Below are positions 13,357-60,224 of a stretch of DNA of 64,000 nucleotides, in pieces (within the stretch, counting starts at the first letter, position 1; each line of letters opens with the position of its first letter). Below the pieces are notes generated by a model. That model worked only from the letters and a program-made list of their open reading frames with translations. It was not told the DNA's origin and did no database searches. The DNA lies in the NCBI GenBank assembly GCA_030704615.1, contig CM060733.1:59892001-59956000 (forward strand), read 5' to 3'. Position numbers and translations under genes: made by a program. The DNA is from Takakia lepidozioides (taxonomy: Eukaryota > Plantae > Bryophyta).

Positions 13357-13710
13357 GCAGCCCTAAAAATGGAGGGGCTCGGATGGGTTATGGGAATGGA
13401 CGGTGACGATCCTGCGCGTCAGCGGACTGGTGGCAGGGGACTGGTCAGCGGACTGGCGGACTGGCAGACTGCTGGGCAACAGACTGGCAGACTGGAGGGC
13501 AGCGGACTCATGGGCGGCGAACTGGCCGCGCGGTGGACGGGGGCGCGGGCGCGGTTGCTGTAGCCGCGCCGCGGCTAGGCGACGCGCGCAGCGGCGGGCG
13601 GGGTGCGGGGGGTGCGGGCGGTGTGCTGGGGAGCCGGGCGTCCGTGCGCGGGGCCCACCGGCCACATCGCACTTGCCCATTGAAGACTTTATTATCTTAA
13701 AATGAGAGGC
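13357..13710 (-). repeat. Right TIR of MULE
   Basis: Inverted match to 5053-5449. Confidence 0.9.
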
Positions 13711-14929
13711 ATTTGTAAATATGTCATAAGCCATAACTATTTGTACCAATTACCTTGTGATTTTCACATAGAAAGAGTTCCATTCGCCTATTATGGCTTT
13801 CAGCTATTTCTGTACTTCGCCTTCTATTGCTCATCAACATCCATTTGATTCACCAAATATGACAAGAGCGGAAATCACATAGTTCGAGAAAAATTACCTA
13901 CTTGCACTACCCTACACCAATAATATAGCCACTCGTACCCTTTTCAAAATCCTTAAAAAAACCCTGCTATTGGAGATGGTCAGTAGCGCGTGCCTTTATG
14001 TACTTGCATCACAAAGGCTTAGTATCAGCGCTTCTTTTTAGGGCGAAACGGAGCCTAAAGGCGATAAAAAAAAGGGCTGCGACAGCCCTATGTAAAATCC
14101 TGGAAAAAAAACAAAAATGTGCCAGATAATAGGGGCGCGCACGGGCTGGTGCAAAGCTCCACGGGAAAATGCGTGTTGCGCAAGAAATACACGTTCCCAC
14201 AGCCCTACATCTAGCGGCTGTCGCCCCTTGCGCGATAAGGGTGAGATCTCGCCATGGAGCACGACCTGGACCCTTGCTATTTGAAATTGAGGCTATGGTT
14301 TTTTGCCGGCCATCTTGGACTTTTTTGATTAATTATTTTAGATTCAGATTGTGAGTGGGCTCAAATCGCCATATTGCATGCAAATGAAATAGCCTGTAGC
14401 CAGTTGATTTTTAGCTAAGCATCTATGTCATCGCCACTTTGCACTTAGCCTTCAAATTTTGTAGCCATCTACGCTTCTTAGCCAAAATGACTGATTAGTA
14501 TCTTACATTGGACTGATTCGAGGCAGGGATCTCAGTTACGCCTTTGCAACCCGACCAATCATCCAGTCACCACAAGACCTTCACCTCAAGAGCAGCTTCG
14601 ATTGAAAGCGCAGATTAGGGTAGGTTCACCGACTAGGTGGTTCACGGTCAGCCGTCACGAGAACTGGCCGGTGCGCGATCGCCACTTGGAGGTGCTGGCA
14701 TTCCAGGTAGAGTTTCTCACAAACCAAGTTCATTCTTCGCATCGATGGCAACTGAATTCGCACGTGTCGCCGCGCCTTTGCTGACGACGCAGAGTTCGGG
14801 CTGCCTTGCCACATGTCGCTCTCTCAGTATTCGCAGTGGCTGACGTCTGTTCATCCAAAGACAGCATTGTCATCAACGAGGAGAAGCTTAGGTAGGTAGC
14901 TTCTGTTCCAACGTACGTTCAACTAGGTG

Positions 14930-15021
14930 AAGTCCTGCAACGAGGCTTTACGGGATTCAAGGTTCCACAGCCCCGAGGGCGTGGGAATCTTGAATCCCGT
15001 AAAGCCCGAGTTACGGGACTT
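14930..15021. repeat. ~92-bp hairpin (inverted repeat)
   Basis: GCTTTACGGGATTCAAGGTTCC pairs with GGAATCTTGAATCCCGTAAAGC; outer arms AAGTCC/GGACTT; centre CCCCGAGGG. Confidence 0.85.
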
Positions 15022-15284
15022 TAACTCATGTAAAAATTGCATTTATGACCGTGTGAAAAGAAAATTACTTGCCTATCTGCCCGTAATGTGAGATTACGGT
15101 CCGAGCCCATGGGCTCCACGGCGTAACAGGACAAGCCTGATTTTATGCTATTAAAAGCGCACCAAAACTACACTTGCTAGGTTTTTACGGTAGCACAATG
15201 CTCCAGTACTCCAACTTTTGGGGAGCTGCCCGGCCCTGAATTTTGAGATGTTTAGAGTTTATACCTATATTCAACTCACCTATT

Positions 15285-15840
15285 CATAAGTTTAGCAATA
15301 CCCAAGAGTTTCTCTGGTAAAAGTTTTTTGAATATTGAGTTTTGGATATTCTAGTTGATACTATAGATTATTTTGCTGTGAAACCTATGTAGGGGAATCG
15401 TAAAGTTTACTGGTCCCAGAGTTTTTCTGGCTAAATTTTGTAGATTCTGTATTGATTTTTTTTTTTTCCAAGAACAGGGGATGGAGGCCCTGGAAATATA
15501 TTAGAAAGAACGGGAAAAAAATAACCCCGTGGAGGTACAGCCTTAAAGCGTATTAAGGGGATACCACCCCATCAAGCAGCAGATATGAGAAAAGCAGAGC
15601 TAAGATCGAAGGGATTTTTTTTGGATACTTTAGTCCTATAGATTATTTCTCCGGTGAAACCTATGGTGGATCGTAAAGTTGGCAGTACCCGGAATTCTTC
15701 CGGCTAAATTTTTGTGGGTTATATATATATACATATACATATACATATGGCAAACTAGAGATTGTTTCACCGGCAAAACCTATTTAGAGATCTATTGGTT
15801 TTAAAAAGTTTGGTGATTTTTGCTGGTGAAACCTGTTTTT
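15285..15840 (+). repeat. Degenerate tandem repeat (CTATAGATTATT...GTGAAACCTAT...GGCTAAATTTT) interrupted by a short poly-T-headed insertion (~15455-15620, LINE-tail-like)
   Basis: 3-4 imperfect copies are visible; the insertion is flanked by GATTTTTTT on both sides. Confidence 0.5.
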
Positions 15841-17596
15841 GTCTACACATATATATTAAAAACAGTGAGAGACCCTAGTACAATTGGACTATACCAATAT
15901 GTGTACATATTTTATCGTTGAAATTATAAAACATAAAAATGAATAAGAACAGTCTGAATACCCGGCGGTGGAGCAGGTGTGGAGCAGTGTTTTTTCCTAG
16001 TTACTAATCGCAGAGATATCGACTTGGAAAATGAAAGTGAACTAGTTGAATATCTGGAACCTGAGTTCGCCTACGTGGACCTGTCAAAACATACCACCTG
16101 TTATCTATCCACCTGCCACCTCGTTATTCTGGCCACATGAGCGCTGGGTAGAATTGACATGTGGCCCTTGTAGCGATTTTGGAAAAGTGAAAAAATATCA
16201 TGTTGTGGAGTCAACCTATTAGTGTGGATTTGTGGTCACATGACTAGGCTCACGTGATGCCAACTCCCATCGGAACGCAAGCCTTTGGGATATACAGAAT
16301 CCACGGATCATTCGTTTTACACATGACTGTTACCAAAAGCCTGCTATCCTATGCCATCCAAACGAGAAAAATATGCCCCTTTCATCTTGGGCCTTTGGCA
16401 ACATGGATGACAAGTGGGTCATTTTACGGTAATCTCAACTGGAATTCGGGGATGGCATTCACATCAACCGTATCCGTATTCGCTCTCTTTTAGAAATATG
16501 CATCTTACAGCAATCATAGGGTCCACACCAAAGGTCGGTAGCTGAACTTAGGCAACGTGGCTATTACAGTTACGGCGGCTACGGCCGGAGTCTTCCCTCG
16601 CTCACCAAAAACATGAAATAAGCGAGAAAATCTTGGCCAGCGATCGATTGCGAGGTCATGTTCACGGTGTGACCCAAGGTGGCGGATGGCACGCACTTTG
16701 TTGCGTGCGGGATCCAACTACATGCCACCAGTTTCCACATGAACCGACGAGGATGCATGGACGAAACTGCCAACTATGGATGAAGACCATGACCATGGAT
16801 GTAGAGAAGGATTCATTGCAGACGAGGATGAAGATGAGTGAATGGATGTCGTTCGCACTCAGTGGGTGGCAGGAGCCGTGCTGATTGGGGCTTATCGACG
16901 CGTGGCGCAAAGCGGGCGGTTAGCCTGTGGCAGGCAATGTCTTTTCAAATATCCGTGGTCGCCGAATTTGGCGACCGGCTGTGGCGCCCAGCAGGATGTC
17001 GGCGCGTTTTCGCCAGACAGCAGCAACGGCTGTCGTCGAGTTCGCCACCTTTCGCCGAGCGTGGCTAAATTAGGTCAGAGTGGCGATACTGGCTCGCAGG
17101 GCGGGCGGGGAGTGTGGAGAGAGACGATCTGTCTATCTCGGTTGTGTGTGTGGTGAGAGTGTGAGGAGCATGGCGGACGAGAGAGATGACGGAGTGTGGA
17201 GATGGGAGCAGCGGGGAGCAGTGGAGGGAGACAAGGAGTCCGGCTCCATAGCCTCCTTGTGCCGGTGCCGTTCCCGGAGCGTGTTCTGCTTGTTCTACAT
17301 TGCGGTGAAGTTTGAGGATGCTGGAGCGCAATTTTGGTAGAGTAGCAGGTGAGTTGGATTTTTGTGTGTTCGTTTTTTAGCCTGGGCCGGGCGTGCATTG
17401 GGTTTTGGTAGGGGATCTCCAGAGCTAAAACGTTACAATCTGGGAGATGTGCAGCAATTAATTTTAGATGCACAGAATCTCTAAATCAACCTCTGGTGGT
17501 GGTTGAAAATTGACAGGACTGTATAGTGTAAATTGGAAGGAGGAGGATAATTTGTGAAATCAGCTCACCTGTAAAGTAAGCAGGAGTAAGCCAGAT

Positions 17597-20361
17597 ATGG
17601 GGGCTTTTGGCGATGAGTTAGTGGTTGTACGAAGGGGACATCATCAAGGGGATCCCAGCGAGATTGCAGTAAATTGTCCGGACAAGGTCGGGTTGGGGTG
17701 CGACCTTGCCCGAGTTGTTTTCGAATTTGGCCTCAGTGTTGTTCGTGGAGGTGATTTCTTGGCCCTTTTGTTACCATTCATTCATGGAGCAGGTTAGTGC
17801 AAGTTTTGTGTTGTATGAATCTGTTTTGGTTCTGGGAGCATGTGATAGTATGTACATGTATTTAGCCATTTTTCAGTCGGTACTAGGAACGTTTCCAAGA
17901 AACCGTCACCGGGTGGGTTGGTGCTTTATGATCCATGTGCTGTTTTTGTTATACAGAGCTCCAGTTAAGGCACGTGGTTCAGAGCTGGGAAGTGGCAGTG
18001 ATTGCTATGGATGGAAAGTAAGGAGTAGCGGGTTTTGGGTTGGCTAAATTGCAGATTTGTCGACAGATGGGCGGTTGGTGCTATGTTGTGTTGTGGGGGT
18101 GGTGCCCAGAGCAAGCTCGTCAACAGTTCGATGGCCACTCTTGAAGCAGCGGCTCGAAGAGGTTTGCCCGTCTGCTGTCATGCAACTGGTTCCTCCAGTA
18201 GTGCCTGCTGAACCAAAGTCCAAGACTGTATTGCTCCTCCAGGTCTGCTCAACAGATCGAACAGGTCTTCTTAATGGTGAGCTTGCTCCTTTCCTTGGTA
18301 TTGTTTCTTATGCACAACTAACACAGAGGTGCAGTAATTTTTCTATCCACTCCAAAAAAAAGATTATGGCCATGACCTTTGTTCGGCTTATGGTTAGACA
18401 GGGTCTAGTTCAGTTGCCTTTAAGCCTCATGGCGTCAATTTTCAATAGTTGTTCCTTGCGCGAAAGCCTCATGTGTAAGGTCGGTGTATTGAACTTGGGA
18501 ATGTGGATTGTGGCATTCTGGCAGATGTTGCGCAGAAAGCTGTGGGAAATGGAATTGACCATACACAAAGTGAAAGTGTCAACTAGCCCTGATGGCAAAG
18601 CCATTAACTTTTTTCTTTGTTACAGACAACAGGTAAGGATTCTCTCAAGCAGATACAAGTTCTGGAAAGCAAATAGACCAATGTTCACAGCTATCTCACA
18701 ACCCACGAACATCACAAAATTACACCTTCAATCCACGAGATTTTAGCCTTGATCTGCTCATTATCATCTAAATATCATATCTTGTTGCATATGATTTTAA
18801 AAGGTCTATTGTGTCCATGCAGGAACGAGCTCCCCTGGAAGAAAAGGGCAGCAGAAGTTTGTGAGCAGGTCAGAGAAGTGCTGGGTGAATCAATTTCTCT
18901 CTGTGAGCTGGGTTTGGCAGGTCCTGAATGTGGAGCCTAAATTGTGCACCCCTGTCCGTTTGCTGGCCAATGACTTGTTTGGGGATGCCCCTACAAAAGC
19001 GGAGGCAGAGAAGGACGGTAGTCTAGGCAGTCCTTTCAAGTGTGACTCTCGACAACATCACCAGCCCGCCCATACCCTCCTTCAAATCACATGCAAAAAC
19101 CGCAAGGGTCTTTTGTATGACTGTCTTCGCACAATCAAGGACGTGAAATTGAAGGTTTGGCTGCTGACTTTGCCATCCATTTCCGCTTTATAATTTTTTT
19201 ACTTGAACCTGATGGCATGACTAGCTTCAAGGTAGGAATGTCAGTCACTGTCTGCAGAAAGAGGCTGTCTCATTTTTCTTTGTGTTCACCTAGAACACTG
19301 ACTGCAGTGGAAGCCACGATTTGTGATTGTGCTGCTTAGTGCAAGTACTAAAGCGGCTTTCTGTGCTTGCATGTCAATCTGCACCTTAAATGTCTTTTTA
19401 GTTTCCTTTTCAGAGGTTGTTTTTCAATTTGTTTTCATTTTCTGTCACAGTTTAATGGACATCCGCCTAGCCGTGGGCCGGGAGGGTGTGGGCAGTTTCT
19501 TTGATGGCAGGAAGTTGTGACCCTTGTGTAATGTTGACAGGTAGCACATGGGCGGATTGCAAAACTTGAGGATGGCAGCACTGAAATAAGTGTGTTCGTG
19601 CTGCGAGGAGATGGCCGGAAGATTACAGATGTGAACGAGCAAAAGGGGTTGTGTCGCTGCATGCAAAATGAAATCGAGAATCCTTTACGGATTAAGATCG
19701 GGAACAGGGGCCCGGATACTGAACTACTGGTTGCTACTCCCATTGAGCAGAGTGGAAGGGCCGGCCACGAGTGTTGTATGATGTAACTCTTGCTCTGAAG
19801 TACATGGATATATGTATATTCACGGTCAGTCTTGCTTCCTCTTTCTCTATGTAGCATTCTATCATCTTCTTTTGAGGGATGTATCTCCACAGTTATTCCT
19901 AATGGGGCATTTGCTTGCAGAATTAACTGAAGTGTGGGATTCACCACTTGAAGGTGTTAAGACTTGCCTTCAATCAAGTTTCTACATTAATGCAGAGACA
20001 AACAGTGTTTTCTGGAACTCACTGAAGTGTGCATTTTGGTGTGAAACAACAACAATTTTTGTAATCTTTATGGTGCTTATCATGTCCAGTAAGTGTTTGC
20101 ATCTATGAACTTACTTTTTAAAGATACTGATGGGTCGTGTTATTTAGTCTGATTTCCTCATGTGGCAGGTAAGTGGCCTGTGCCTCCATATTAATGAGGG
20201 GATGTTTCAAAACTGCAGGCAGATATTGGAAGGCATGTTGTGGCAGAGCAACATTGGGAGGTATATCGATTTCTGCTTATTGACAGACCAGACTGGCTCT
20301 GACAAGTAGCAGGGTCCGCAGCTTGATTGAAGAACGCGTGCGACACATTCTTATGGGCTGA
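17597..20361 (+). CDS. ACT domain repeat protein, ACR9/ACR10-like; exons 17597-17750, 18055-18276, 18525-18632, 18823-19154, 19541-19824, 20219-20361
   Basis: VNCPDKVGLGCDLARVVFEFGLSVVRGD, DRTGLL, KVKVSTSPDGK, HTLLQITCKNRKGLLYDCLRT, NRGPDTELLVATPIE, RPRVLYDVTLALK and WEVYRFLL are all characteristic of plant ACR9/10. GT-AG introns; 5' UTR intron ~17349-17583. Several 1-2 bp indels break the frame as assembled. Confidence 0.92.
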
Positions 20362-21153
20362 AGAGCCTTGCGTCCCAAGCCCACTAGGTTGTACTGCAAT
20401 TTGTCGACCAGCAGCTGAAAGAGACACATCTGGACAGGAATTAGAAATCAGGTGGTGCTTCCATGAGCTGAAAATTCAAGCTCCTTTGTAAATTATAGAG
20501 GTGTGGCAGGCAGTGTTAACGTAACGTTACTGTTGTGTTAACTCTCAAAGGGAAACCTGTCTTTTGGTTTTTGAAGGGGGCCTTCCTAGGGTTTGACGAG
20601 GTTCTTGAAGCTCTGTATGGGGGACATTCTTTTCCAGGTCAAGTATTGTACCAGTAGGTACAGTATCTGTTAGTACAAAGCTACATGATAAGTTAAGGCT
20701 GCTGGATGCTCGTCCACTGTAGTTTCTCGACTGCTCAACTTCATGGGCTAACTCTAGGTCGAAATCCTTAGGATCAGGGCACCCCCGGAAGAAAGTCAGC
20801 CTAAGTGCTCTGGTCACACTGGAAAGTGGGCACTTAAAGAGCTGGTCTAACTCCATACCCCTTAACACATTCAAATGTTAATATGTGAATACAAGTTATG
20901 GCGACCTTGCATGGTCTTGTGTCTGTCACCTTGTAGGTCCCTCAACAATGTACTTAGTGTGAGCCTTATTCTGGGTGATGTGCATGCCATTCCCTTCTGC
21001 ATTTCTACAGGAGAGTAGTCATGTGAGTCTGGCTTGTTATGGATGCTCTTAAACCCATCCTTTCTATGATAATAGTTTGCATTTGCTCACTGGTTTGAGA
21101 CCATGATGGCCCTTTGAGTATCCTTCCAACTAAAGTTTCTGGTATGAATTCCT

Positions 21154-21885
21154 CTACACTGCTTTCTGAGGATGACAGTTCAAGCAGCTGCAAGAGTAAT
21201 AAAAATGAGCCAGCTGTGTCTCTGTCGATCACTAGCACCCAAAAACCCTGAATGCCCTTTGTTTTCTCTAAGTAAACCCCAATGCCACCACCAAATTATC
21301 AACTACATCCTCAGCATGCACCACAACACATTCGACACTCTGAAACGGTCCTTTCCAGCCCACTAATGAAGAGTCAGAAATGACCTGCGCATGCAGACAC
21401 AATGCGGGCACTCCAGTGATCCGAGTAACGAAGGAGACACTGCGAGCTGAGATTTGACGGACTCTTGAAGCTCTCGTATGTACGTATGTACTCTGCAATT
21501 GGTGGAGGAAACATGCGTACTACAAAGGTGTACTGAAACATGCGACCGTGACCACGAAAGCAAAACAATCCTCAACATATGCTTTGCGCGGTACGTTATT
21601 CTGTGTAGGACTTAGCTTTCGCAAATACTTGAGCGTCGTAGGCCCCACCGACGGCCGAAATGTGTGTTCAGGTTTCGCTTGGCCAATGGATTCCAGTATA
21701 CTGATATGCTTTTGTGCTATGCGCTCTGAGGTTTGAGAGGTGCCAGGCGGCGGCCATTGGGCCATGTCTGCATGAAGGTCAAGCGGACATACCTCCACGC
21801 GCCAGCATTAAGTACCAAGCGCACACGGAATTACCCCGAGAGATTTGTGTAGATAAGCTCTTTATCGCATCACAACTGCGTAATC
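21154..21885 (-). CDS. Possible 3' exons of a convergent gene of unknown function (21885-21793, 21492-21385, 21187-21154)
   Basis: GT-AG splice sites join in frame to ...CAWYLMLAWRVHTYIRELQESVKSQLAVSPSLLGSLECPHCVCMRSCLNCHPQKAV*. The upstream part would run into the gap. No recognised family. Confidence 0.3.
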
Positions 21886-22056
21886 CTGCATTTGCGAGTA
21901 TATGTACATGAGGAGTTTCAGATCAGGCGTCCTACAATTCGAGGAAGGAGCGGCAACTGAGAGTGAGGAGTAGATACCACTTGTCAGAAAATCCTGGTCT
22001 GGCTGGAGGGATATGCTTCGTTCCTGTGAGGATAGGCAAGTGTTCTGGCGGTTTGA

Positions 22057-22556
22057 NNNNNNNNNNNNNNNNNNNNNNNNNNNNNNNNNNNNNNNNNNNN
22101 NNNNNNNNNNNNNNNNNNNNNNNNNNNNNNNNNNNNNNNNNNNNNNNNNNNNNNNNNNNNNNNNNNNNNNNNNNNNNNNNNNNNNNNNNNNNNNNNNNNN
22201 NNNNNNNNNNNNNNNNNNNNNNNNNNNNNNNNNNNNNNNNNNNNNNNNNNNNNNNNNNNNNNNNNNNNNNNNNNNNNNNNNNNNNNNNNNNNNNNNNNNN
22301 NNNNNNNNNNNNNNNNNNNNNNNNNNNNNNNNNNNNNNNNNNNNNNNNNNNNNNNNNNNNNNNNNNNNNNNNNNNNNNNNNNNNNNNNNNNNNNNNNNNN
22401 NNNNNNNNNNNNNNNNNNNNNNNNNNNNNNNNNNNNNNNNNNNNNNNNNNNNNNNNNNNNNNNNNNNNNNNNNNNNNNNNNNNNNNNNNNNNNNNNNNNN
22501 NNNNNNNNNNNNNNNNNNNNNNNNNNNNNNNNNNNNNNNNNNNNNNNNNNNNNNNN
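22057..22556. other. Assembly gap (500 N)
   Basis: Run of N. Confidence 1.
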
Positions 22557-23134
22557 TCCAGAAGGTCCAAATTTTTTGAGGCATGTGCTCCATCCATATT
22601 ATCTCTCTCTGACGAAACAACTAAATGGGCTATCCCCTATTTTTAAGACGACGGCGCCGTTGTTGAGATCTTAGAATCCATGTACTGCCTTCTTCTTATG
22701 AGCATATGAAACATAAATGCTCTGCATGTTTCCATTTATTTTACAACCAATCGTTGATTAATCGTCCAACTATGAACTGACACACTAGACGACACAATTT
22801 ATTTACAATCAAATCCCATGACATGTATGTTGATTTGTTCTTTGATTACTCATGTATGAGTAATGAGTACAAGTATTTGTGGCGACAATTGACTCTAAAA
22901 CCAATAAATTGATTAAGACACCTATAACAAAATATTTAGTTACTTTATCACTTACTTTTATATTGTATTATGAAGGCGCCGCCACAAGTAACATGTCAAT
23001 CGTACAACCATCTTCTGAGGATCCACGTGTAACCCATGTAGTCCAAAAAGCACTAACGCCAGATGTATAAAAAAGGTTCACATTTCAGATTTGGCCAATT
23101 TGGCCTAGCCTTCGCTCCTTTCCCCCCGCTCTCC

Positions 23135-23200
23135 TTGGCGGGGGCAGGTTTGAACCCGCAACCTAGTGGAAAATACACCACAACCTTACCAACAAGCCAT
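23135..23200 (-). other. tRNA-like remnant (A/B boxes)
   Basis: Reverse complement TGGCTTGTTGGT...GGGTTCAAACC...CCA; no intact cloverleaf. Confidence 0.4.
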
Positions 23201-23490
23201 GCTCTATTCAATGAAACAACCTCTACTTTTTTGTTAATAAACTGTTTCTATTCAGTTAAACTTGTTGCCATTACTACATGACTAACCCGGTATCATTATT
23301 ACACTAACGTAGTCTAGTATACTTGCACATTATCCCTTGTCACTCCCCCCAAACAAACACACACAAACTACACAAGCACTTAACACGTCTCTAGTCTCTA
23401 CACCCTGGAGACTCCCGTTGCGAAGAGGAGACGGAGGCGCCGCATCTCGGCCTTATACTATACCACCCGAGGCAACGAGCTGTTGCGGCG

Positions 23491-26400
23491 ATGGGGAGGA
23501 AGAAGGACACTTGAGGGGGAGGCGTTGCTGGTGGTGGTGGTGGTAGAGGCAAGCTGCGGACGGAGAAGGTAAGCTGTAGTTTTTTTTTTTTCATGACCTG
23601 CACTTAGGCATATGCGCCATCGCATAAGCCCCACCAAGCTGCTCCTAATCTAGCACCTCCGCCGGCGCAGATGCCTAAGTCACTTCAACTCTCACAAGTT
23701 TGCGAATCTCCACACATACACACAACCGTCTCCGCCGGCGGAGACAGCTCATTCCCCTTGGTTTTTTCTGATGCTTGGAAGGGCTGGGCTGCCACCTCCG
23801 TCCCGGTGCATACCGTTGGAGCTGGGATGCTCACATGTTTCAGGAAGTGCTCCTCTACTCCCATCCCGTTTATTTTTTTGCATGCTCATACGTTGTTGAT
23901 GCTCCGAGCGGGTTGGGCTGGCGTATCCGCCGGCGCATACCTGTGCAGCAGGCTGCTCAAATGTTTCAGGAAGTTCTCCCCTTTTCCATCTCCTTTGTTT
24001 TTCCGCATGCTCAAAATTTGCTGATGCTCCAAGTGGGCTGCGCTGGCATATCCGCCGGCGCATACCCATTGAGTACATTCTTTTTTGCTCAGCTCATAGG
24101 TTTCAGGAACCTCCTGCAAGCGTCTCCGCCGGCGGAGACACTTGGAGCTTGGTTTTTTTTGCATATTCCCTGTGTTACGGAAGCTCCAAAGCGCCAAGGC
24201 TGCCACCTCTGTCAACACAGACCCGTGCAGCAGGGCTGCTCACATATTTCAGGAAGTTCTCCCCCCCTTCCATCTCTTTTGTTTCTCCGCATTCTCATAA
24301 GTTGTTGATGCTCCGAGCGGGCTGGGCTGCCATATCCGTCGGCGCATACCCATTGAGCACAATCTTTTTTTGCTTAGCTCCTAGGTTTCAGGAACCTCAT
24401 GCAAGCATCTCCGCCGGCGGAGATGCTTGGAGCTTGGTTTTTTGTTGTATATTCCTTGTGTTACGTAAGCTCCAAAGTGTCGAGGCTGCCACCTCCGTCG
24501 GCGCAGACGCTTGGGGAACCTTCCCTATTTTGGTTGATCACAGTATTCAAGTATCTCAAAGCTTCTACGTTGCCACCTCCACAACTCCACATGCTTCCAT
24601 AGGCCTAGTTTGATCTTTCAAGGTGCTCCTGTATGTTTGGCTACAACCTCCCTTCCATGGTATGCGCCGGCGCATATGCTTGGAGCTCCTTGAGCAAAAA
24701 TTTCTTCAAGGGCCTCAAATCTTGTCAAATTTTGAGTTGGTTGCACATATGTGTCATATGCGCCGGCGTAGGTGGTCGGAGGTCCTCTGTCGGGATGCTC
24801 ACACCTGTATTCTGCTCCAAGTTGTAAGCTTTGAAAGACAAGGATATTCATGGAATTAGTTGACTATCCAAATTCGTTTGTTTTCTTCATGCAACCATGA
24901 CACTGAACTGCTCTTTTTACATATTATACATTCACACATGTGCTCTTCTCATACACTGACATCTTGAACTGTTTTGGTCTATGGAATTAGGAAATTACCA
25001 CTACAACTGAAGCTGTGGAGGCCGGGACGCTTGCAACCATTATTGACGACATTGATGCAGGGAATTGAGGGGCAGATGAGTATGAAGATGATACAACATC
25101 TAGTGATCCTCTTTCTCTAGATGCCAAACAGGCAATTATTCTGGAAAAGAAACAAGATCTGAATGTAACTTTCAGGTCCCTCCTCATTGAGGATGGAGTT
25201 ATGGACATTCCATTGTGTCGCATGATTTCTATGCAGGTTGTTAGGCCCGCCCTTGCCAACGACATCCTAAAGCTTAGAGGAGATTTCTATTCTGGATACC
25301 ATCCAGGAGCAGCCGTGTTCTATGTTTCTGTTGAGGGGATTGATGGATCTACTATAGATGTAGGTCCTGATATCATCTCTACATGGGATAGTCATTGGAA
25401 AACAGTCAATGATGAGTTTGAGAAGTATCTTGAGTCCAAGCCAAAGTTGCATCATCTTCGGGGGAAGATGTTTCATGTCTGGGATGGGAATCATAGGCTT
25501 CAAGCATGGTATCCCTATATCAATGAAGTTCATGGGGCCAACTTGTTAAGACATGTCTGTATGACAAGTTGGGTGCTCAATGCGGACATTGAAAATCGTG
25601 GTTCCCTCAGGTCCATCATGGATGGAGTGAATGTGTGAGTTTCCTTTCTATTCTTCATTTACTTTCATGTTCAATGTTGTCATGTTCTTGCTCAATGGAT
25701 GTACATATACACATCTTCTTTCTAATGATCATATTTTATATGTGCAGGGCAACAGAGAGGGCACATGTTACATCCAAATTTGTGCACTTGGTTTGCAAGG
25801 TCAATATGATTGGCCTTACACCTGTCTCTGAATGGAAGAATGTATTGAGGAAAGAGCAATACGACGAATGCATCAAGAAAACAGGAAAGACTTGGTATAA
25901 CCTGACAGTCCATGCAATGACAGAGATTTTGTACAAGGTAACATCATGTCTTAACCAAGTTTCATTCTTTGCATCCATAGACAAGATTCACCTCTGGTTC
26001 ATGTTATGAACTGTTTTGGTTCTTTTGGCAGCATGATATTGTTGAGGCCCAACGCATGGCGGGGGAAGCTTACAAACTTGCTGAGGGGCCAAAGAGTCAA
26101 GAGGGCCTTGAAGATACAATGAGACAGGCTGGATTGAAAGCAAGGGAGCAACACAAGAGTCAGCTTGTGAAGTTGCTTCCTATTGCTGATCCAACCCTTG
26201 GAGAGGGGTTTCTCCAAGAACTTAAACTGCATTGGTACGTGTAAAGGCAGGATCAGAGGAAATGACCCAAGAGAAAATGGTGAACATTGCTACCGCCCGG
26301 GTGGATCCTGAAGAAAAGGTGGAATGGCTACATATATGGAATGGAGACCAAACACTTCACGACCGTAATTTTTTTCCACCCGGGCCTATCAGTGGGCCAA

Positions 26401-29143
26401 CACTTGATCCTTGGCTGAATAGAAGGACTTTTTGGTGGCAGGTACATATACAATCACTATCTTCTCAATGCAATTAATTCATTTTGTTGATGACACATTA
26501 ACATAGTTATTTAACTGACTGTATTTTCTGGCAGCTTTGCAAGGTTGCCTTGGCTCAGTTTGCCTTGTACACCACTCAGCTTGGCCAATTTCATGTTGCC
26601 TTGGAGGAAAGAGAGAGTGAGAGTCTGGGAGACTACATGGATACCTGGAAGATGACTCATTTCAATGAGTTGTTTCATAGAGAGTTCTCATTGCCAAAGG
26701 GGCCATTCATAGGCAATGATTGGGAACAACAAACAGGTGGGGAGAAGGTGGTGAGACGGATTTTATTCAGGTACCATCTTTCCATTGCATTGTACATGGA
26801 TAGTGTATACACCTTGTAAGTCAAAAATGTCTATGCTTCAAGTATTTTTCTAGTACATTGGGATATACATGTTTCTTAATGTGCTTGTTCAATTGTTGAA
26901 CAGGTTGCATAAATATTTGTCTCCACAAAAACTTAGAATGTGTTTGTATTTTAGGTACATGAGATTTGTGCTTGTACTGAGTGATCGACTTAAGGCTGAG
27001 CCCAAGTTTCTGATGGCCTGGAAGTTTGGTGCTCAACAAGCTTCCATGTACACACCTGCAATTGAGGAAGATTGGGGTGTGGAACACCGGGAAGGGGGGG
27101 GGGTTGGTATTTGGATATGCCCAAGGGTACTATCCCCTATGCAGAAATGGGACTTCATAAGGAATGTGTTCGCAGGCAGTCAGTGAGTGATGAAGGGGTA
27201 TCTCCACTGAAGTCCATGTTCTTGATCTGGAGCATGCAGAACAGATTGCTACACAGGCCGCTGACGTTGTAGCCCAAGTGGTCCCTGCCGTTGTGGGTGT
27301 ACCAAAACGCAAATCACGAAAAAGAAAAGATGCGGATGTCAATGCAGGTGTGGCCCCCAATGCAGGTGTGGCTTCTATTGTTGGTCCTATTGGTAGTTCT
27401 TCACATCCTTCAAATCAGTTGGTTGTAGTGCCTGCACCTACTACTCGAGGAAACAAGCCAAAGGCAGGCGAACATCCTTACAGTGCAGTGTCATTTTCTG
27501 GTGGTGCACCTAGCATGTATCGCATGAAGATCATGCCTACTCATTTCATTGATATGGTGGAGGCCTCAAGTACATCTCCTGATGCGACCTTGAAAGAGCT
27601 CATGGAGTTCTTAAAAAATGTGAGTTTCCCCCAACAAACAAACTTGAATGTAAGGAATTCTTCGATGTTTTTATATCCTCATCATCCGGCTATTGACTCC
27701 TACATTTTCTGTATGTTGTTTGCAGTTGCCAGGAACTTGGTCTAGTGTTGTGGATGGAAAAAGCGTGCATGTGGCTGTGGACATGATCATCGTGGACTGC
27801 CCAACAGGAATGCCTGTACAGGGCTGTTTGGATGGTGTACAGGTTCCTCCCTGGAATGCTTTTGATAAACGGTATTGGGAGTATGCATTCTCCATTGCTA
27901 ATGACTTGTTGGATGACAATGGATGCTTGGTGTTCTTGCAGGGCTCCGATGATTCCTTTGCATTGGAGCTCTTTTCTTACTCCAGGGGCAGCTCTATTTC
28001 CGTATTATCAAGGAAATATACTTGCATCAATACCACCCCTCTACACACTCAGACAGGAAAGGTAAAAATCATCCTTCTTCAATATCTCATTGTTTGATGT
28101 TTCATCTTCCTACTCTCATACATATTATTAAACCATCCGGGTGCACTATTTTTGTGGAAATGGCACGTCTAACATACCATGTTCTTCCACGCCCATGTCC
28201 TCACCAAGCAAGGAGGACTATTCAAACTGCGTGAGTCTGGCAAAGTTGTGGACCCCCTTGCAGACCCTGTTGAGTTGGATGCCATCTACAACCACATTCC
28301 AGATGTTGCACTACCCATGCAAACTCCTCAACAAGCCTGGAGGGGTGCGCGAGACCGTAGTCCCGCCTTCATGCAAGTGTTGTTGGAGACATGCTCACCT
28401 CCTGGCTCCCGCATTTTGGATCTCACAGCTGGCACAGGTTTGCATTGGTCTCCATTTTGTAATTAAAATCTTCTGAGCTGATTCATGATCATTAACTGTT
28501 ATCCGATATAATATCATCATTGCATGTTTTTTTCCTGCAAGTTCTACATTTATTGCTGCTCGCGAGTCTGGACGTCTCGTATTTGGTCTTGAGGGGGACC
28601 AGACGTTGTATGCAGCACGTCTCTCTGCACTTCAAAATACTCAACCCGTTTTGGTTTCATCTGTGGTAACTCCAACCATTCAACGTCCTGTGAGTTTGTT
28701 GGAACCCCCCGCTCCTAAGGTGGCGCGCAAGCTTGGTCTTCATCTCGGCAGTACTTCCTAGTGAGTATGTCTCGCCTCCATTCCCTTTGTTGCAATCTCT
28801 ATATTATTTGCAAAGCAAACCATTCCCATTTGATTTGTTAACATAAGTATACATGTATGTGTGATGCAGTGATGGGATTGTGCGGACCATCTACGATAGT
28901 CTACCCCAAAGTCCTCTTTCATCGTTTTATCTACCTTCGTATGCCGAGTCCCAAGCTTTGCATTTAATACATCAACAACGTGATGTAGGTCTTTCCAATG
29001 ATATGTTGTTTGACCGAAGAGCAGCTATTGTTGGACAATCCGTGGATAGGTTGCGTAGAGTTGAGGCTTTCATGGATGTGTATGCCTCTGAATCACAGGC
29101 TTATGACACGGATGATGAAGTATCAGCTGATGATGTTATGTAG
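23491..29143 (+). pseudogene. Spliced ParB/Srx-like domain + beta-class N4C/N6A DNA methyltransferase fusion gene
   Basis: Exons ~23491-23568, 24991-25634, 25748-25937, 26032-26441, 26535-26770, 26955-27619, 27726-28061, ~28140-28437, 28541-28760, 28870-29143. FHVWDGNHRLQAW is the ParB/Srx signature. VDMIIVDCPT sits at the motif IV (DPPY) position. RSPAFMQVLLETCSPPGSRILDLTAGTG|STFIAARESGRLVFGLEGD matches motifs X-I-II of N6_N4_Mtase. In-frame TGAs in exons 1 and 2, frameshifts and two mutated acceptors. Confidence 0.85.
23655..24790. repeat. Array of ~11 exact or degenerate CGCCGGCG/CGTCGGCG palindromes within ~70-125 bp imperfect tandem units (intron 1 of the ParB-MTase gene)
   Basis: Copies near 23660, 23732, 23800, 23928, 24053, 24127, 24337, 24412, 24496, 24665 and 24761. 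Confidence 0.9.
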
Positions 29144-31059: not shown

Positions 31060-34000
31060 TGAAGTGGGACATGTGACAGCAAGAAATACAAGGAGCCCCT
31101 CTTTTGCTCTACAACGCATCGTTACAAAATCCGGACAAGTGCACGTAGGAAAATTCCCCACGGTAACCTGATATTCTTTGCCATGAAGAACTGAGCTAAT
31201 AGACAGCACTGTGTAAATCCGTCCATACCCCGGGGCAGGGACTTCGGTGATACGAATCACTCGAGCCTGCAAAATTCTAGCCGATTCCATCTTGCAGTCG
31301 TGATCTGCACCCAAAGCGACACGGCGCACTGTTTTTCCATCTCTTTTTGTTGGGTGGGAGTCGGCACCGGGTGGAGGCATTGCCGGAGCATGTGGCACAT
31401 CTGTGCCCACAGTGCATGAGGGCACCACCCGGGACCGTGCAAGACGGAACCCTCCCTCCTCCAGCATGCATATCTCGGTTGATGACAGCGACGTCCCAAG
31501 TTTCACAGGCCAAATTACGGGGGGAGGGGGCTTCATTATCACCGAAGGACGAACTGTTCCCTTGACGCATCATGCCATATCGTCTGGGCAGAACCAGAAC
31601 TTGTGCTCCTTTGACTCCCCACTATGATAAGGTCGGAACAACCCTGTGAATGCTGGAGTCCCCCTGGAGCCTTTGCATATTTTTTATTTGCATTTCTTGA
31701 AAGAGGGGGTCCGAATTGCCATGCAAGCCACTCTAGATCCTGGTGGGGTGCGTTCTATATGCCACTCACTATCAATGCAATCAGATTCATGCACCAAGGA
31801 CACCACCTCCTCCAATGGGATTCCTGCTGTTGTGCTTGCATGATCTGCACCTGCTCCACTGGAAGAGGACCCACCTGGAAAGGGGCGGGCACACGACTTA
31901 GTCTGCACCGGAGACACCTTTGGCATAGAGAAATTGTCCCTGTCCGGCCGATGGGAATCTCCATCCGACCCTGGAGGAGTGTTCAATTTCCTTTTGCATG
32001 ATCCAAATCTTTCCTCGACTTCCAAATGGGGGACCCTGGATTGCAAAGGGGAGCCTTCAGTGCACCTGTTCAGAGCTCTGGCCATCTTCGATGGGTCTCC
32101 GGACCTACTCGCAGCCCTTAGCATCAACAAAGTCGTATCAGGGCCCTTGCCTCTGCCCCGTCCCATCAGAAAATTGTGGTACCTGGTTTGTTGTGTAAGT
32201 GCCCGCACCATGTCATCAGCAGTGGTCACATACAAGTCACGTCCCGCTTTGGTAGACTGCTGCATCCAGGCGTTGTGAACAGTCTCCGCCAAATTACAGG
32301 ATGGCATGTCGGCCAAGTCCTCCAAGGACATGTCCTGCAAGAGGCATTGCATGCAAATGTGAGGAACGAAAGGAAATGCAAGAGGTTCTGCAAGTGATAA
32401 TTCAACAACCCCAAATGAACAGGCACGATGCAAAGTGAAATTTGTATTTCTGGGATTGAAGAGGCTTACAGTCATCATGAAAGCTCCCCACTGTCTGTAC
32501 CTGAAGTGCCAGAAAACCAACCAGTCCTCCAACTCCTTCAGGTGGATACCAGTAGCAGCACCAGAGGAGAACCACCAAGCCCGGATTGCTTGGTAAGTGC
32601 TCTCAGCTTCTCCCATTGAGGTGGCATTTTTGTACTTGAGGCAGAGCCTTCTGTGCTCTAACTGAAGGTCAGGGTGAATGCAACGCTTTGTATGACGTGC
32701 CAGAGATTGACTCCAATGGAAGAGGCATGTGCGCTCCCTATTTTCCATTGGGACCTTAGGATCCCCTGAACCAAACACGTGCCGCACTGCATTGAAATTT
32801 GCCTGTGCACTATCAGCTATGAAGCCCGCAAAATTTGTGTTCTGCATTCCATTGCGCTGCATGACGGCTAGGAGCGAATTCCACATGAGCATCTGGGATT
32901 CAGTGTCCTCCGACTGCATATCACAAATTGCTATGGAGAGCATACACTGGTACGCTGGATCGTACACATGGCACGCCATGGTTGTCCAACCCTTCACCCG
33001 TTTGCAGTGATCAAACATTAAACAACATTTAGCCAAATCTCCTCCAGGTTGCATTCGGCGGACTATGCTCACACCACTGCCTTTGCCCACTGTGGACATC
33101 TTGAACAAATACACCTTGGACGAGCCCTGGCCAAGGAAGATATTGTTTTGAATGAATTCATAGCGACTCCTCCGTTTGAGGTCCATAATGTTGTCCATGA
33201 AGCCAACACTGCCTGTGCCCATTCTGAGTGCATTCACCTGGTTTCGAATATTGGGAGAGCTCAACACGGAGAAATGGTCCATCACTGCATCAAGCGAATC
33301 TGCATCCAGCATTGGTTGTGTCGCATCCCCTTCACCCAGTATGTGTTTTTCCAGGAATGTCTTGTTAGCTGCAAGGGCTATAGCAGAAGGTGTTGCACAA
33401 GGGGCATTGTGGAACTCCTGCTTCAGCAGATTTCTAGCGATGTCCACGCTATCCCTGCAACTTTTTTTTGACACAAGATGCTCGTGTGTACCCATATGAA
33501 TGCAGGCACGAGTCATTGTCTTGCATCGGTGTGCCACCTGGTACATACAAGTGTGGCACACAGAAACACCAGACGGGGAAAGTTTGCAGAACCTGCACAC
33601 AAAAGTATTGGTCTTGGGAGGGGCAAGCTTTGGGATGAAAGGATTCAGGGGCACACCTTCCCACTCACTTTCGTTTGGTTTAGCGCTATTTCTCAGGCGA
33701 GGGCAAGAAATATTGACACACTTACAATGCCCAACGCAAACCGACCTTCGAAATTTCAATCCAATGTCGTTGTGGATGTTCGATGTTTTTGTCCTGCACC
33801 AAGGGTGTCCGTCATGTTTCTTGTCCATGCCCTGCAGAAGCCCAGCTAGTCCACTGGAAGACGTGGGAGGGTTGAGCTCAAACAAGATGTCCCCATCAAA
33901 CTCTGCTGGCACATATTAAACCCGCTGCACCCGAAATGACTCCCAATCAATAAAATGCAGCTCGCTCTTGCACCCAGGCACCCCTGTGAGGGCTTTCAAT

Positions 34001-34491
34001 TTTGGAATGACACTCGTTATCTCCTGCAATTCGTCATCATCCAAGAATGGAGTCTGCACTGGCGGAGGAATCTCATAAACATCCTCCGAGGACGAGTCTG
34101 AAAGAGTCACGAATGTAGTGGATGTGCTCACATCTTGTTTCACATGAACTATGTCCTTCTGCTACACGACCGATGCTGCAGTGCCAAGGGTAACTACTGA
34201 TCCTGCTGATTGTCTTCTCTCTTTTCCAAGGACCCGGTATGTTCCTGGAAGGACTCTCCACTTCCTTCCACACTCGCCAACCAATGGTCTCTCCAAGTGT
34301 CCAGAATCCAAATTCCCATCCTCGTCATACACCTTTTTTTTAACAAGCAGAGAACCCAATTCCAGAGGGAACACTATAACCTGCTCATCCTCAGGAACAA
34401 CTGCAAACCCATCGTCATCTACAGTGGCAGTCAATGGAAGACTACCTGCATTGGAATGAAATCGAGTGAGTCTATCTTCCTCCCTGGACAT
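31060..34491 (-). pseudogene. Mutator-like DDE transposase with N-terminal GCM-like Zn domain and C-terminal SWIM finger
   Basis: DGHPW...CVGHCKC.N..CP...CRFC...HMGTHEH (GCM/WRKY-like); FDHCKRVKGWTTMACHVYD, FIADSAQAN, TCLFHW and NLAETVH (MULE catalytic core); YQVTVGNFPTCTCPDF (SWIM). The 742-aa ORF 33912-31684 reads through an in-frame intron (~32336-32470). Stops and frameshifts lie on both sides. Confidence 0.85.
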
Positions 34492-35974
34492 GTTTTCCTA
34501 CACTGACCCAAAGTTGCGATCCACAAAGGGTCCCCCGAACTGATAGCCCGCAATTCTCGAAAGGGGATCCACCCCAAATGAATTGGGGTGAATAAGGGTA
34601 GCACTGACCCAAAGACTGCGGGCGATGCATGCATCGGATGTAAGAATGACATGCACGGCGAAAGTCTGTACCGAACTTCGCAGTCAGCCACACTGAGAGA
34701 CACCAACCAGAAAAACTATTTTCAAAGACAAGAAGCCACAAGAAGCCGTGCTGTATTTGGATGAAAAGCAAACCCTGAACATGACATGAAACCATCCATT
34801 ATGGAAAGACGGCAACGACCCTGGAGACCAGTAAACAGGAAACCCCGAATCTAATGAGGTTGTGCTGTGCCAGAAGAGCACAGCACAAACACTGACACTC
34901 CGGGGGATACCTCGCACGAATGTGTGCAACACATCACCATTGCCGACACAAACCTTTATACCGAATGACCCCATTGCGACGGTGAAGGCGAAATGCAAAC
35001 CGCAGGGTAGGCAGTACAACATACGTGGATACATATGTGAAGCATCACAATTATTGCGAATCTGCAAGTACTGCTCGAAATTGAACTAGCAATAGATTAT
35101 TACGACACTTCCGAATTTGAAAGAATGCGAGAAGGCTGTCATGTGTTGGCAGCCGGCGAAGTACATCTGACATATATCACAAGTACATGCAACGGCATTG
35201 GAAGTGCCACCATTTTTTTTCTTGGATAATACAAAGACGCAAAAATGGATGAATTTCGTTCGCACACAATGATGACACCCGCATCCAAATACGGTTAACA
35301 ATGTCCAATTTTTATTTTGGATACATGCCAAAGCAACCCTTGTTGCAAACGTCAAACTGGAGAGCTCTAGAGGCAGCGTGAGGAGCCCTTGTTTCCACCG
35401 GAGGAGGAAGAGAAGGAAGTCGTTATACTTTACGAGCACTAGGGACAGGAATAGAGCCAGACATAGAATGAGGATGGAAAGAGTAGACGAAGAGGAAAAG
35501 GAGGAAGAAGATGGCAAAGAGGAAAGTTTGGCGATGGAAGAGCCGGATTCTGGAGAAGAACAGCAGTCCGCCATACTTCCGAGAACAGGTGAGGAGGAGA
35601 CTGCATCCGAGGGAGAGACGGACGTCGAAGATGATGTTGATGCTGGCCTCACGAAGAAGCAGATAGTGGAAAAGAGGATGGGGGAGATGCTCCAGAACAT
35701 GCTCGGCGTAGAGAGCAGTCTGAAGCGCAAAGGGTCTCCGGCGTTTGGGGAGTCTTCTGGAACAGCCAAAAAAAATGTACAAGTTCTAGTTATCATTCCT
35801 GACGTGACGTGGCGCTGACACGTCGGCCATCACATCAAGTCGAATCCGGACGTTTACCGATGTAACTTTTTTTACATTTGACTTTTACGATTTACTTCTA
35901 CCCTTTGTAATGACATGGCAACCACGGTGTAAAACAGACGGCCAATTATTAATATTTATTAATTCTTCTTATGA

Positions 35975-36340
35975 GTCCGCCTATATTGGCGATCGCATAT
36001 AATTTATTATTTTTAATAAAAAGCGACCGCCCATATTGGCGGTCGCCTGTAATTTATTTATTTTTAAATGAAGCGATCGCCCATATTGGCGGTCGCCCGT
36101 AATTTATTTATTTATAAATGAAACGACCACCCATATTGGCGGTCGCCCGTAATTTATTTATTTATAAATGAAGCGACCGCCCATATTGGCGGTCGTCCGT
36201 AATTTATTTATTTTTAAATGAAGCGACCACCCATATTGGCGGTCGTTTGTATTTTATTACATTTTAAAATAAGGGACCGCCTACATTAGCTATGTGGCGG
36301 GCGCTCTTCTTGTTTTTATAAATATAGCGACCGTCATGCA
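35975..36340. repeat. Palindrome array A: 50-bp tandem units with GCGACCGCC-CATATT-GGCGGTCGC
   Basis: Units start at 36021, 36071, 36121, 36171, 36221 and 36271, with AT-rich linkers. Confidence 0.95.
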
Positions 36341-36484
36341 GCGGTCGCGTGTTTTTTTTTTTCTTAGAAATCCAGGGACCCGCCGTGTGGTGTTTTGTTT
36401 TTATATTTTTAATCATGAAGCGGCACCTCGGCCAGCCACGTGGCGAGGTGCCACGGGTCAGGAAAAACGAAACAAATGGGATGG

Positions 36485-36550
36485 GGGGAGGTGGTTTTGA
36501 ACCCTTGACCTCTCCCATGTGGGTGTGCGTGGCGAAGTGCGACTGGCTAG
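36485..36550 (-). other. tRNA-like remnant (B box GGGTTCAAAACC)
   Basis: Reverse complement TAGCCAGTCG...GAGGTCAAGGGTTCAAAACC; degenerate. Confidence 0.3.
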
Positions 36551-37053
36551 TCGCGCCGCGCTGACACGTGGTGAGGCGCCACTGGCCTGTCGCATCTTTT
36601 CAAGCATAATGCCATTTTTATTTTTTTTTGCTGCTCCATTCCCCCCTCATTTTCTAATCATTTTTGCCCCTCTTGTGGTGCGGTTCCTTGGCATCCTGTA
36701 GTCTTTTCGGACTTCGTTGCTTGGCACTGCCAACGGGAGGTGCAAAGGTGATTATTTGGGGGGGGAGGTTTTGTCGGTTTTCTATTGGTCAGTCCCACAC
36801 ATTTGTTCACGGTACAATCATCGTATCACCATTTTGCCATTTCCGGATCTCCGGCGGCCTGTTTCTTTGCAGAAAACTACGAAGACACCATCCACACGCG
36901 TTCATTGCCATTTTTCTGAGGTTTTGGACCCTGTAGTGGGCAAAAGTTTATACAATGTCGGGGGTTGTGAATTCAAGTTTTGGGGCGTGATCGTCTGGGG
37001 GGCGGAGGAAGAGAAAACGTGCCCACAAGCGGGATAGCCAGGTCAACAAGTCA

Positions 37054-38420
37054 GACTACCCGGGACCGGATGCCTTGGATAGGGTGAAAGAAGTGGTAGC
37101 GGATTATTTCAAGGGTAGGGACATGATGAGGCTGGAGAGTGCTTATGTTAGGCATGGATGGGATGGGTTTCAGATTTTTCAGCAAAATATGGAGTGGAAA
37201 ATGACAAACGCTTCGGCGGGGGCTAAGTGGACGGCGGACATGGACAACCCGAAGTTCAATCGGTGGATCCAAAGCAGGGCGAAAGACGTCACGTAGAATT
37301 TGAGGCAGCTAATGAAGACATGGAAGGATAAAACAACCGAGGGTCGAGTGCCCTCCGCCGAAGCTGAGTTAATGCGGCATGTTGAGTATTGGGCTTGCTC
37401 GGCAAGTCAGAATTTACATTGCCGGACTAGGGTTGTCTCTTGGAAGGCGGGGTCATCGGGCGGGGGAGGCACAACTGGTCTTTATTACCTGAACTCTACT
37501 GCGAAGGTGGTAGAGATTGGCCCTTACAAAGAAGGAGGGTATACTAAGGTCCGTCACTCTAGGATTGTTGGCGATTCTAGAATACCGGAGCGTTAGGAGC
37601 TAACGGGAAAAAAACCCAAGTCCAAAAATCCAGAAAAGGCGTTGAGACAACATAACGACGAGTGTTTGGCAGTGAAGTTCCAACATCCGGGTGTTATCTC
37701 GTATTTTGCTGTGAATGCACGTGAGGTAGAGGGTTACACTCACTGGTGGAATGGGGGGACAATACGCGACATGATGAACCTTGACAGAAAATGAGGCAAC
37801 GATTCGGACAACAGGATGATTTTGGAACAAAGGGGAACGGAAGCAGAGTTCCAGGAATGCGATCGCTTGCTTCGTTTCCGGAAAGTGCGCAGTAAACTTG
37901 CATGGGCACTGGTGTGCATCATGGATGTTGTCCACAAGAACGGTGTCATGCACAACGACTTGTCCCTCGACAACATCTTGTTGCATTTTCCAGATGACAC
38001 CGAGGAGATCAAGATTGGGGTGTGTGATTGGGGCTTAGCCACCCCATTGGGCGTACGCAAAGCTTCGTCGTACCAGTTTGAAAACCAAGACAAGCTGGAC
38101 CGGGAACTCGCGAAAAGATGGTGGGTGGAAAAAGATATTGCATCGGTTTTCAATGTGAGTACTACCCCCCCCCCCCCTAGGACATGACGTCAGAGGGCTT
38201 TGTCTTTGGGAAGATAGCGGTACAAATAAATGGCGGCGCTCATTATAATTAAAGTATGTTCCAGGACCAATTTACGGGAGGTTGTTGGCATTCAATACTA
38301 CAAAGGTTGTACGACAACAACAAGAATGAGATAGTCACATTAGCCCATGTAGTACTTCGGTTCATGGCAAGCCATTCAATTGGCCTGAGCCGAAAGACGT
38401 ATATAGGACGGAGTAGACCA
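37054..38420 (+). pseudogene. Intronless protein kinase-like cargo gene
   Basis: One frame with internal stops: EGGYTKV (Gly loop), QHPGVI, HWWNGGT, VMHNDLSLDNILLHF (catalytic loop), VCDWGLA (DFG equivalent). Frameshift at the poly-C near 38165. Confidence 0.85.
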
Positions 38421-60167: not shown

Positions 60168-60224
60168 CGAGCTAGAAAATATGACTAGAAGGGGACTTAT
60201 ACCTTACGGTTTACGGATCGAGGG

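Follow-up and report, generated by a model that had tools for sequence, protein, structure and literature searches.

What is a gene that joins a ParB-like domain to an amino-methyltransferase, and is interrupted by introns, doing next to a transposase in a moss genome? The question is raised by a 64,000-nucleotide stretch of Takakia lepidozioides DNA (assembly GCA_030704615.1, contig CM060733.1, positions 59,892,001 to 59,956,000 of the forward strand), hereafter called the window, in which a first-pass annotation, made from the letters alone, had marked positions 23491–29143 as a decayed gene of this kind carried as cargo by a DNA transposon. The window consists of plant-like DNA with a G+C content of about 45% and is broken by an assembly gap of 500 N at 22057–22556. 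We read the marked stretch as a pseudogenised accessory (passenger) gene copy of a land-plant Mutator-like DNA transposon, and put the probability of this reading at roughly 60%. The outline of the earlier interpretation is borne out by our analysis; its framing of the gene as rare and novel is not.

All motifs quoted earlier for the ParB-like and methyltransferase parts are found in plus-strand frames of the window. VWDGNHRLQAW lies within the open reading frame (ORF) 25201–25638, IIVDCPT at approximately 27786–27806 in ORF 27693–28097, and RSPAF followed by LDLTAGTG within 28179–28466, while STFIAARESGRLVFGLE is read in frame 1 at approximately 28543–28593. By reading the DNA, about ten exon pieces with GT-AG borders can be placed on the plus strand from 24991 to a stop codon at 29141–29143, matching the exon number first given for the gene. 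The doubtful part of that model is its beginning: a putative exon 1 (23491–23570, plus strand) has an ATG at 23491 and a GTAAGC donor, meets an in-frame TGA at codon 8 and is supported by no homologue.

The remaining exons, all on the plus strand, were followed by comparison with related loci in other contigs (designated L001 onwards) and with an alignment of the family. Exon 2 (24991–25634) encodes the ParB/sulfiredoxin-fold N-terminal domain, with the motifs IPLCRM..VRP.. and VWDGNHRLQAW. Exon 3 (25748–25937) has AG/GT borders and is kept in L001, L002 and L008, and exons 4 and 5 (26032–26441), which pass from frame 1 to frame 0, correspond to one ORF and a single exon in L008. Exon 6 (26535–26771), its borders read in the DNA, shares 71% identity with L001. 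Exon 7 (26955–27620) encodes a linker with a basic KRKSRKRK stretch and is read in three pieces, in frames 1, 0 and 2. The methyltransferase part opens with exon 8 (27726–28061), which contains motif IV as DCPT (27795–27806) and then motifs V–VIII, matches L001, L002 and L008 and aligns with the family profile. Exon 9 (28209–28437), placed by an ORF match in L008 and by the family alignment, contains a counterpart of motif X (WRGARDRSP..) and the opening half of motif I (ILDLTAGTG). Exon 10 (28541–28758) supplies the remainder of motif I and motif II (STFIAARESGRLVFGLEGD) together with STFIAARESG; its acceptor AG lies one base off frame. Exon 11 (28870–29143), for which acceptor and frame could be read, encodes an acidic C-terminal tail, weakly conserved in L001 and L008, and the stop codon.

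The ParB-like domain escaped sequence profiles: Pfam, including ParB_N (PF02195), gave no match to the exon at E up to 1, and a profile of the ParB-like exon family run against PDB sequences returned no ParB, its one match being a spurious eL24. Its fold was recovered from structure prediction. The AlphaFold2 model, predicted for the exon as it stands in the window (188–189 amino acids) and made with 84 relatives, has a mean predicted local distance difference test (pLDDT) score of 92.6, and the top Foldseek matches in PDB all belong to the ParB/sulfiredoxin (Srx) superfamily (Noc, SbnI, sulfiredoxin, ParB, KorB, PadC, Atu1540 and a serine kinase), with probabilities up to 0.99 and E-values no better than 0.02. 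VIA-align placed the CTP-bound N-domain of Caulobacter ParB (7bm8) first, with Z 8.9 and a root-mean-square deviation of 2.1 Å over 93 residues; Z reached at least 5 in 57 of 115 chains. A viral structure library also returned this superfamily, including a mycobacteriophage "DNA methylase", and the language-model neighbours of the exon are ParB/Srx, DndB or DUF6551 proteins. The ParB/Srx character read from the N-terminal motif in the first-pass annotation is in line with this modelled fold.

The signature DGNHRLQAW is of the DGxHR type, as in Srx, DndB and ParB-like nucleases, and the GERRxRA arginine box is not present. Because of this signature, and on the strength of the predicted fold, we classify the exon as a member of the ParB/sulfiredoxin superfamily rather than as a canonical CTP-clamp partition ParB. 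No helix-turn-helix (HTH) domain was identified in the part modelled, the linker not having been folded. When 1.84 billion representative proteins were searched with the exon by phmmer, 480 matches were obtained at E ≤ 0.001 (clusters at 50% identity), 163 of them at E ≤ 1e-10. Most are short exon-sized ORFs; the long matches come from the ferns Adiantum capillus-veneris and A. nelumboides, where they are annotated as hypothetical proteins. As a separate observation, the ESM-Atlas neighbours of the exon (25069–25632) include an Ascomycota cluster with DUF3723 (score 0.91), a family that we take to be carried as accessory genes by the Starship transposons of fungi. Should that be right, giant eukaryotic transposons may carry ParB-like passengers more widely; this is no more than a lead.

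For the C-terminal part, the Pfam profile N6_N4_Mtase (PF01555) matches an intron-free ORF of L008 (18071–19096) at 30.6 bits against a gathering threshold of 26.7 (E 4.2e-7), over profile positions 1–216 of 221, and exons 9 and 8 of the window match this ORF with E-values of 1.7e-17 and 3.1e-10. Searched piece by piece, the window exons have no Pfam match even at E up to 10, nor do most relatives, P0291 and P0273 included. The family profile (alignment A3) retrieved CcrM first (E 0.008) and DpnA second from PDB sequences; its alignment with CcrM is colinear from motif IV to motif I and sets DLIFADPPYNL against aaDlviaDlpegLpV. A fold search with a model of the relative P0291 returned CcrM at E 2.5e-8, as well as M.BceJIV, M1.HpyAVI, M.RsrI, MboIIA and METTL3. 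The corresponding VIA-align Z scores are 14.3 for CcrM and M.BceJIV, 14.2 for MboIIA, 13.6 for M.PvuII and 13.2 for bdelloid N4CMT (8s9m). PHROGs gave weak DNA-methyltransferase matches to P0291 (E 8e-4). The permuted order in which motif IV precedes X-I-II, pointed out at first reading, is seen in the window exons and in the family alignment alike. Collectively, these results support, at the level of the family, the assignment of the exons to the beta-class, PF01555-type amino-methyltransferases.

The link to a transposon comes from the neighbouring gene. A transposase gene on the minus strand (31117–34440) is convergent with the ParB–methyltransferase gene, the two lying tail to tail and 2 kb apart. 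Its longest ORF (31684–33912, 742 amino acids) has more than 100 homologues, and a 1278-amino-acid relative (P0167) aligns across 34440–31117. The ten best named ESM-Atlas clusters all carry MULE, ZSWIM-RNaseH or SWIM domains and the L008 orthologue has a weak SWIM match (E 0.05), suggesting that the transposase is likely Mutator-like. Three transposase-bearing contigs, picked by length alone (L008, L009 and L010), were fetched, and each of them has a ParB exon no more than 6 kb from the transposase. L008 repeats the convergent arrangement of the window with a nearly intact ParB–methyltransferase copy and has a second copy upstream, and in L009 and L010 the arrangement is divergent.

Each copy also has a palindrome array of its own, beside it or inside it. 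The window array, which has no assigned strand, is GC-rich, occupies 23655–24790 just 5′ of the ParB exon and is built on the core CGCCGGCG, several units being extended to GTCTCCGCCGGCGGAGAC; it comprises the direct-repeat families D9, D10 and D14. Eight exact CGCCGGCG sites occur in the 64-kb window, all eight within 23660–24768, with 0.16 expected by shuffling. L002 has TGGTCGGGTCCGACCA arrays 5′ of the ParB exon and in a long intron, L004 has 405-bp repeats containing TCTGTCGGATCCGACAGA, and L003 has repeats of about 330 bp. The last two are paralogues in one assembly, and despite exon identities of 83–95% their intronic and upstream repeat arrays belong to different families. The gene family is multicopy and fast-diverging, with about 20 gene models in A. 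nelumboides.

Further arrays were observed elsewhere in the window. Those at 35927–36326 and 44664–46460 have units of approximately 50–53 bp with another palindrome, GCGACCGCC-N6-GGCGGTCGC, and one of the two arrays immediately precedes the 5′ end of the transposase gene; they may be part of one giant element with the gene, or of a different element. At 60203–60588 there is a G-rich tandem repeat that has long G runs and units approximately 41–52 bp in length.

The damage to the window copy could be located precisely, in agreement with the earlier description of the copy as decayed: one in-frame stop, three frameshifts and one displaced splice acceptor. The stop is a TGA in exon 2 (25066–25068). 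The first frameshift, near 26236–26240, falls inside the stretch that forms one exon in L008, and two more lie in exon 7, at 27094–27098 (a G run) and 27194–27196. At the exon 10 acceptor the window reads CTGCAAGTTCT, where the break required by the frame would follow CTGCA; in L001 the acceptor, TAG|GA, is canonical. Contigs from two other read runs, X6 and X7, which bear the same species label and cover a small share of the stretch, are 95–99% identical to the window. They have two bases fewer at 27094, a position within a run of ten G, and an extra G after 27194, which brings the three exon 7 pieces into one frame; a contig from another run has G for A at 25068, changing TGA to TGG. Because these contigs restore the exon 7 frame and remove the stop, it follows that alleles or paralogues with less damage exist, or that some of the window lesions are assembly errors. 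As it is assembled, the window copy is incapable of making the protein, and is a dead copy, one of many.

An intact member of the family would encode a protein of roughly 1,100 amino acids, with a DGxHR-type ParB/sulfiredoxin domain at its N-terminal end, a circularly permuted PF01555-type amino-methyltransferase at its C-terminal end and, joining the two, a long linker of low conservation. We hypothesize that such a protein would recognise the palindrome array of its own element and act there in a manner dependent on S-adenosylmethionine (SAM), so that the element is marked or shielded from host silencing, as VANC does for VANDAL elements. This general mechanism, the one we favour, is tentative, and we consider it less probable than not. 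The action at the arrays could be either methyl transfer or mere binding. True methyl transfer is in doubt, since every member examined has the tetrapeptide D-(L/I/V/C)-P-(E/D/F/T) at motif IV; a protein that targeted the CGCCGGCG core would leave N4-methylcytosine (4mC) as its mark, as the core contains no adenine. The more specific proposition that land-plant Mutator-like elements carry a working, phage-derived self-recognition module, one that reads their own palindromes and writes a mark other than 5-methylcytosine (5mC) or blocks 5mC silencing, seems to us doubtful. Were it correct, it would amount to a sequence-specific anti-silencing or self-marking system made of other parts than VANC, with a re-tooled loop D-x-P-E/D/F, and such a system would be abundant in bryophyte- and fern-type genomes.

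Several observations weigh against the passenger-gene reading or against parts of it. Neither terminal inverted repeats (TIRs) nor a target-site duplication was found when 19000–24990 was compared with 34000–38000, the left flank being cut by the N gap at 22057–22556. The transposase has no Pfam match (MULE and Transposase_mut included), and its Mutator label derives from language-model similarity and the weak SWIM match. Four ParB–methyltransferase loci (L001, which was recovered again as L005–L007, L002, L003 and L004) have no such transposase in their visible flanks; the pairing that was first taken to tie the gene to a transposon recurs in three other contigs and is not seen at these four loci, which makes the linkage frequent rather than obligatory. 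The methyltransferase model reaches only a moderate pLDDT of 63 (70–90 in the core) and is that of the relative P0291, not of the window protein. In canonical ParB the N-domain is not the DNA-binding part, so binding of the palindromes by this domain is a conjecture. Finally, two runs guessed to be RNA yielded no transcript contig of the gene, and no splice joints were present in the contigs of the four read runs examined.

The explanation that competes best with an active enzyme on the arrays is a pseudo-enzyme, in which the methyltransferase-like domain would no longer transfer methyl groups and the protein would bind DNA sequence-specifically or sense SAM at the arrays, where it might, for instance, keep out host 5mC or heterochromatin or bridge the ends of the transposon. 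Motif IV is DCPT in the window and DIPD in L008; in 40 relatives it is DLPE (22), DIPE (11), DLPD (2), DLPF (2), DVPF (1) or a degenerate variant (2). Judged from this alignment, the non-canonical DCPT noted at first reading is a trait of the family and not a product of decay. No member among more than 40 family sequences retains (D/N/S)PP(Y/F/W), the aromatic position being E or D in most, and WRG(P/A)REK (WRGxREK) stands before motif I in place of HP(T/A)xKP. As DPPY/SPPY is replaced family-wide, methyl transfer should not be assumed; METTL14, with EPPL, is an inactive relative of the beta class. The D-x-P-x-G loop, motif I (xGxG) and the acidic motif II, however, are conserved across the moss-like and fern clades, which suggests a maintained active site and SAM pocket, and the fern clade retains an aromatic F (DLPF, DVPF). 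On balance we view a pseudo-enzyme as possible and rather unlikely.

A passenger gene could also be two genes. The ParB part and the methyltransferase part might be adjacent and separate, like the red-algal PAG3 and PAG2 discussed below. In L002–L004, repeat-filled gaps of 3–5 kb separate the ParB and E3 exons from the methyltransferase ORF; a transcript contig is lacking in the runs examined, and the fern models are computational predictions. The comparison of loci argues for a single, intron-containing gene, as the first-pass annotation had it. L001 contains the same exon pieces in the same order, with 57–76% protein identity, but with the E7a–E7b segment inverted, and both folds are recovered in the family. 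The ParB exon and methyltransferase ORF share one strand in L002, L003, L004 and L008, and ParB followed by methyltransferase on one strand holds at six independent loci and in the Adiantum gene models; P0273 (832 amino acids, a fern Adiantum model) and P0045 (a partial model) each have both ParB-like and methyltransferase-like parts. Exons E3–E7, which lie between the two parts, are conserved in the window, L001 and L008, where they run in one orientation and are connected through GT-AG sites of compatible phase, and the counterpart in Ectocarpus was published as a single 1104-amino-acid product (PMC12477816). Two separate genes therefore appear quite improbable to us.

Least probable of all is a decayed paralogue of a domesticated host gene lying beside an unrelated transposon: one locus (L001 with L005–L007) is unchanged across four metagenome samples and has no transposase closer than 10 kb, and TIRs were not found in the window, but the family comprises very diverse copies in large numbers, many of them broken, ParB exons lie within 6 kb of the transposase in three of three independent contigs with the convergent pair recurring in L008, and the best 150 matches include no named orthologue except Adiantum hypothetical proteins.

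The surroundings of the relatives and the rest of the window hold further features. In L008, the transposase is separated from the upstream ParB copy by a protein-kinase ORF (5602–7098, minus strand; Pfam Pkinase, 33.5 bits) and from the downstream ParB–methyltransferase gene by an F-box/Kelch-like ORF (14709–15938, plus strand); these may be captured host fragments or neighbouring genes. Downstream of the ParB–methyltransferase copy of L004, co-oriented ORFs at 15033–18883, totalling about 1,200 amino acids, end in a weak match to Ulp1 protease (Peptidase_C48); none of these ORFs is related to anything in the window. Within the window, inverted repeats at 52200–52499 and 58911–59220 (94–98% complementary, approximately 6.4–6.7 kb apart) enclose ORFs at 56219–58470, one with a weak AAA ATPase match, and another pair at 5050–5289 and 13464–13713 (84–91% complementary) surrounds about 8.5 kb.

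Among known systems, phage and plasmid fusions of ParBc with N6_N4 methyltransferases have the same architecture, in which an N-terminal ParB/Srx domain is followed by a C-terminal permuted amino-methyltransferase, whereas the introns and the long linker are absent in the phage proteins. The phage ParB–methyltransferase enzymes retain DPPY or SPPY. A tblastn search of 50,697 phage records gave insignificant matches only (E 0.08–0.7), to annotated methylases over motifs X-I-II, and nothing credible for ParB. The family may descend from a single bacterial or phage gene, and its proteins might write 4mC or N6-methyladenine (6mA) and behave as sliding clamps, as the first-pass annotation supposed; the reading as a 6mA/4mC writer may be wrong, because the catalytic DPPY is replaced throughout the family.

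A functional parallel is offered by VANDAL elements of Arabidopsis, members of the Mutator superfamily that encode the anti-silencing protein VANC, which causes loss of 5mC. Common to both are an accessory protein and arrays of short, family-specific, fast-diverging motifs in the non-coding DNA of the element. VANC has neither a ParB nor a methyltransferase fold, and the resemblance is one of functional analogy only. The VANDAL system is also cited by Petroll et al. in the work on red algae discussed below.

Other eukaryotic proteins share one of the domains in a different setting. Bdelloid N4CMT (PMC8885841) and Marchantia DN4MT1 (bioRxiv 10.1101/2021.02.12.428880) are host genes with (T)SPPY and demonstrated 4mC activity; N4CMT carries a chromodomain, and ParB is mentioned for neither of them in these two reports. 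They have the same permuted PF01555-type fold as the family described here, and differ from it in not being transposon cargo. Fusions of ParB-HTH with Dam occur in chlorophytes and chytrids (Iyer et al., PMC4738411).

Closer still are accessory genes of algal transposons, and it is here that the earlier claim of rarity is not borne out. Red-algal Plavaka elements encode PAG2 (PF01555 with SET) and PAG3 (ParB-like with a 2-oxoglutarate (2OG) oxygenase), with tandem inverted-repeat arrays beside PAG3, and the genes are also found on Chondrus Mutator elements (Petroll et al. 2025, bioRxiv 10.1101/2025.02.11.637652). Shared features are the presence of PF01555 and ParB-like domains on giant DNA transposons and the inverted-repeat arrays next to the ParB gene, and the algal cassette moves between transposon superfamilies. 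The PAG domains, however, are on separate proteins with other partners, in red algae, whereas in our family they are fused and neither SET nor 2OG domains were seen.

The nearest counterpart is Sola1-1_Ec32 of Ectocarpus, a 21.5-kb element encoding a 1104-amino-acid protein with ParB-like and N4C/N6A methyltransferase parts opposite the transposase, which its authors propose to bind and modify its own element (Dinatale et al. 2025, Genome Biol, PMC12477816). Here, too, a large DNA transposon would encode a ParB-like and methyltransferase protein of about 1,100 amino acids on one strand and its transposase on the other. The hosts and elements differ, a brown alga with Sola1 there and a land plant with a Mutator-like element here, and the comparison is one of descriptions, not of sequences or catalytic motifs.

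It was in algae, in 2025, that eukaryotic DNA transposons were first noted to carry passengers combining ParB with an amino-methyltransferase, and the function of these passengers is a matter of proposal; our literature search found no paper on such genes in land plants. As the present family shows, land-plant lineages have the pairing in abundance, in fern gene models and in numerous plant assemblies, and with it come a Mutator-like transposase and palindromes private to each subfamily. An intact copy in a transformable plant would make the role of DNA-binding or DNA-modifying passengers in escape from silencing directly testable. Set beside these systems, the gene in the Takakia window is the land-plant, Mutator-like, fused and catalytically re-tooled version of a kind of accessory gene already described in algae.

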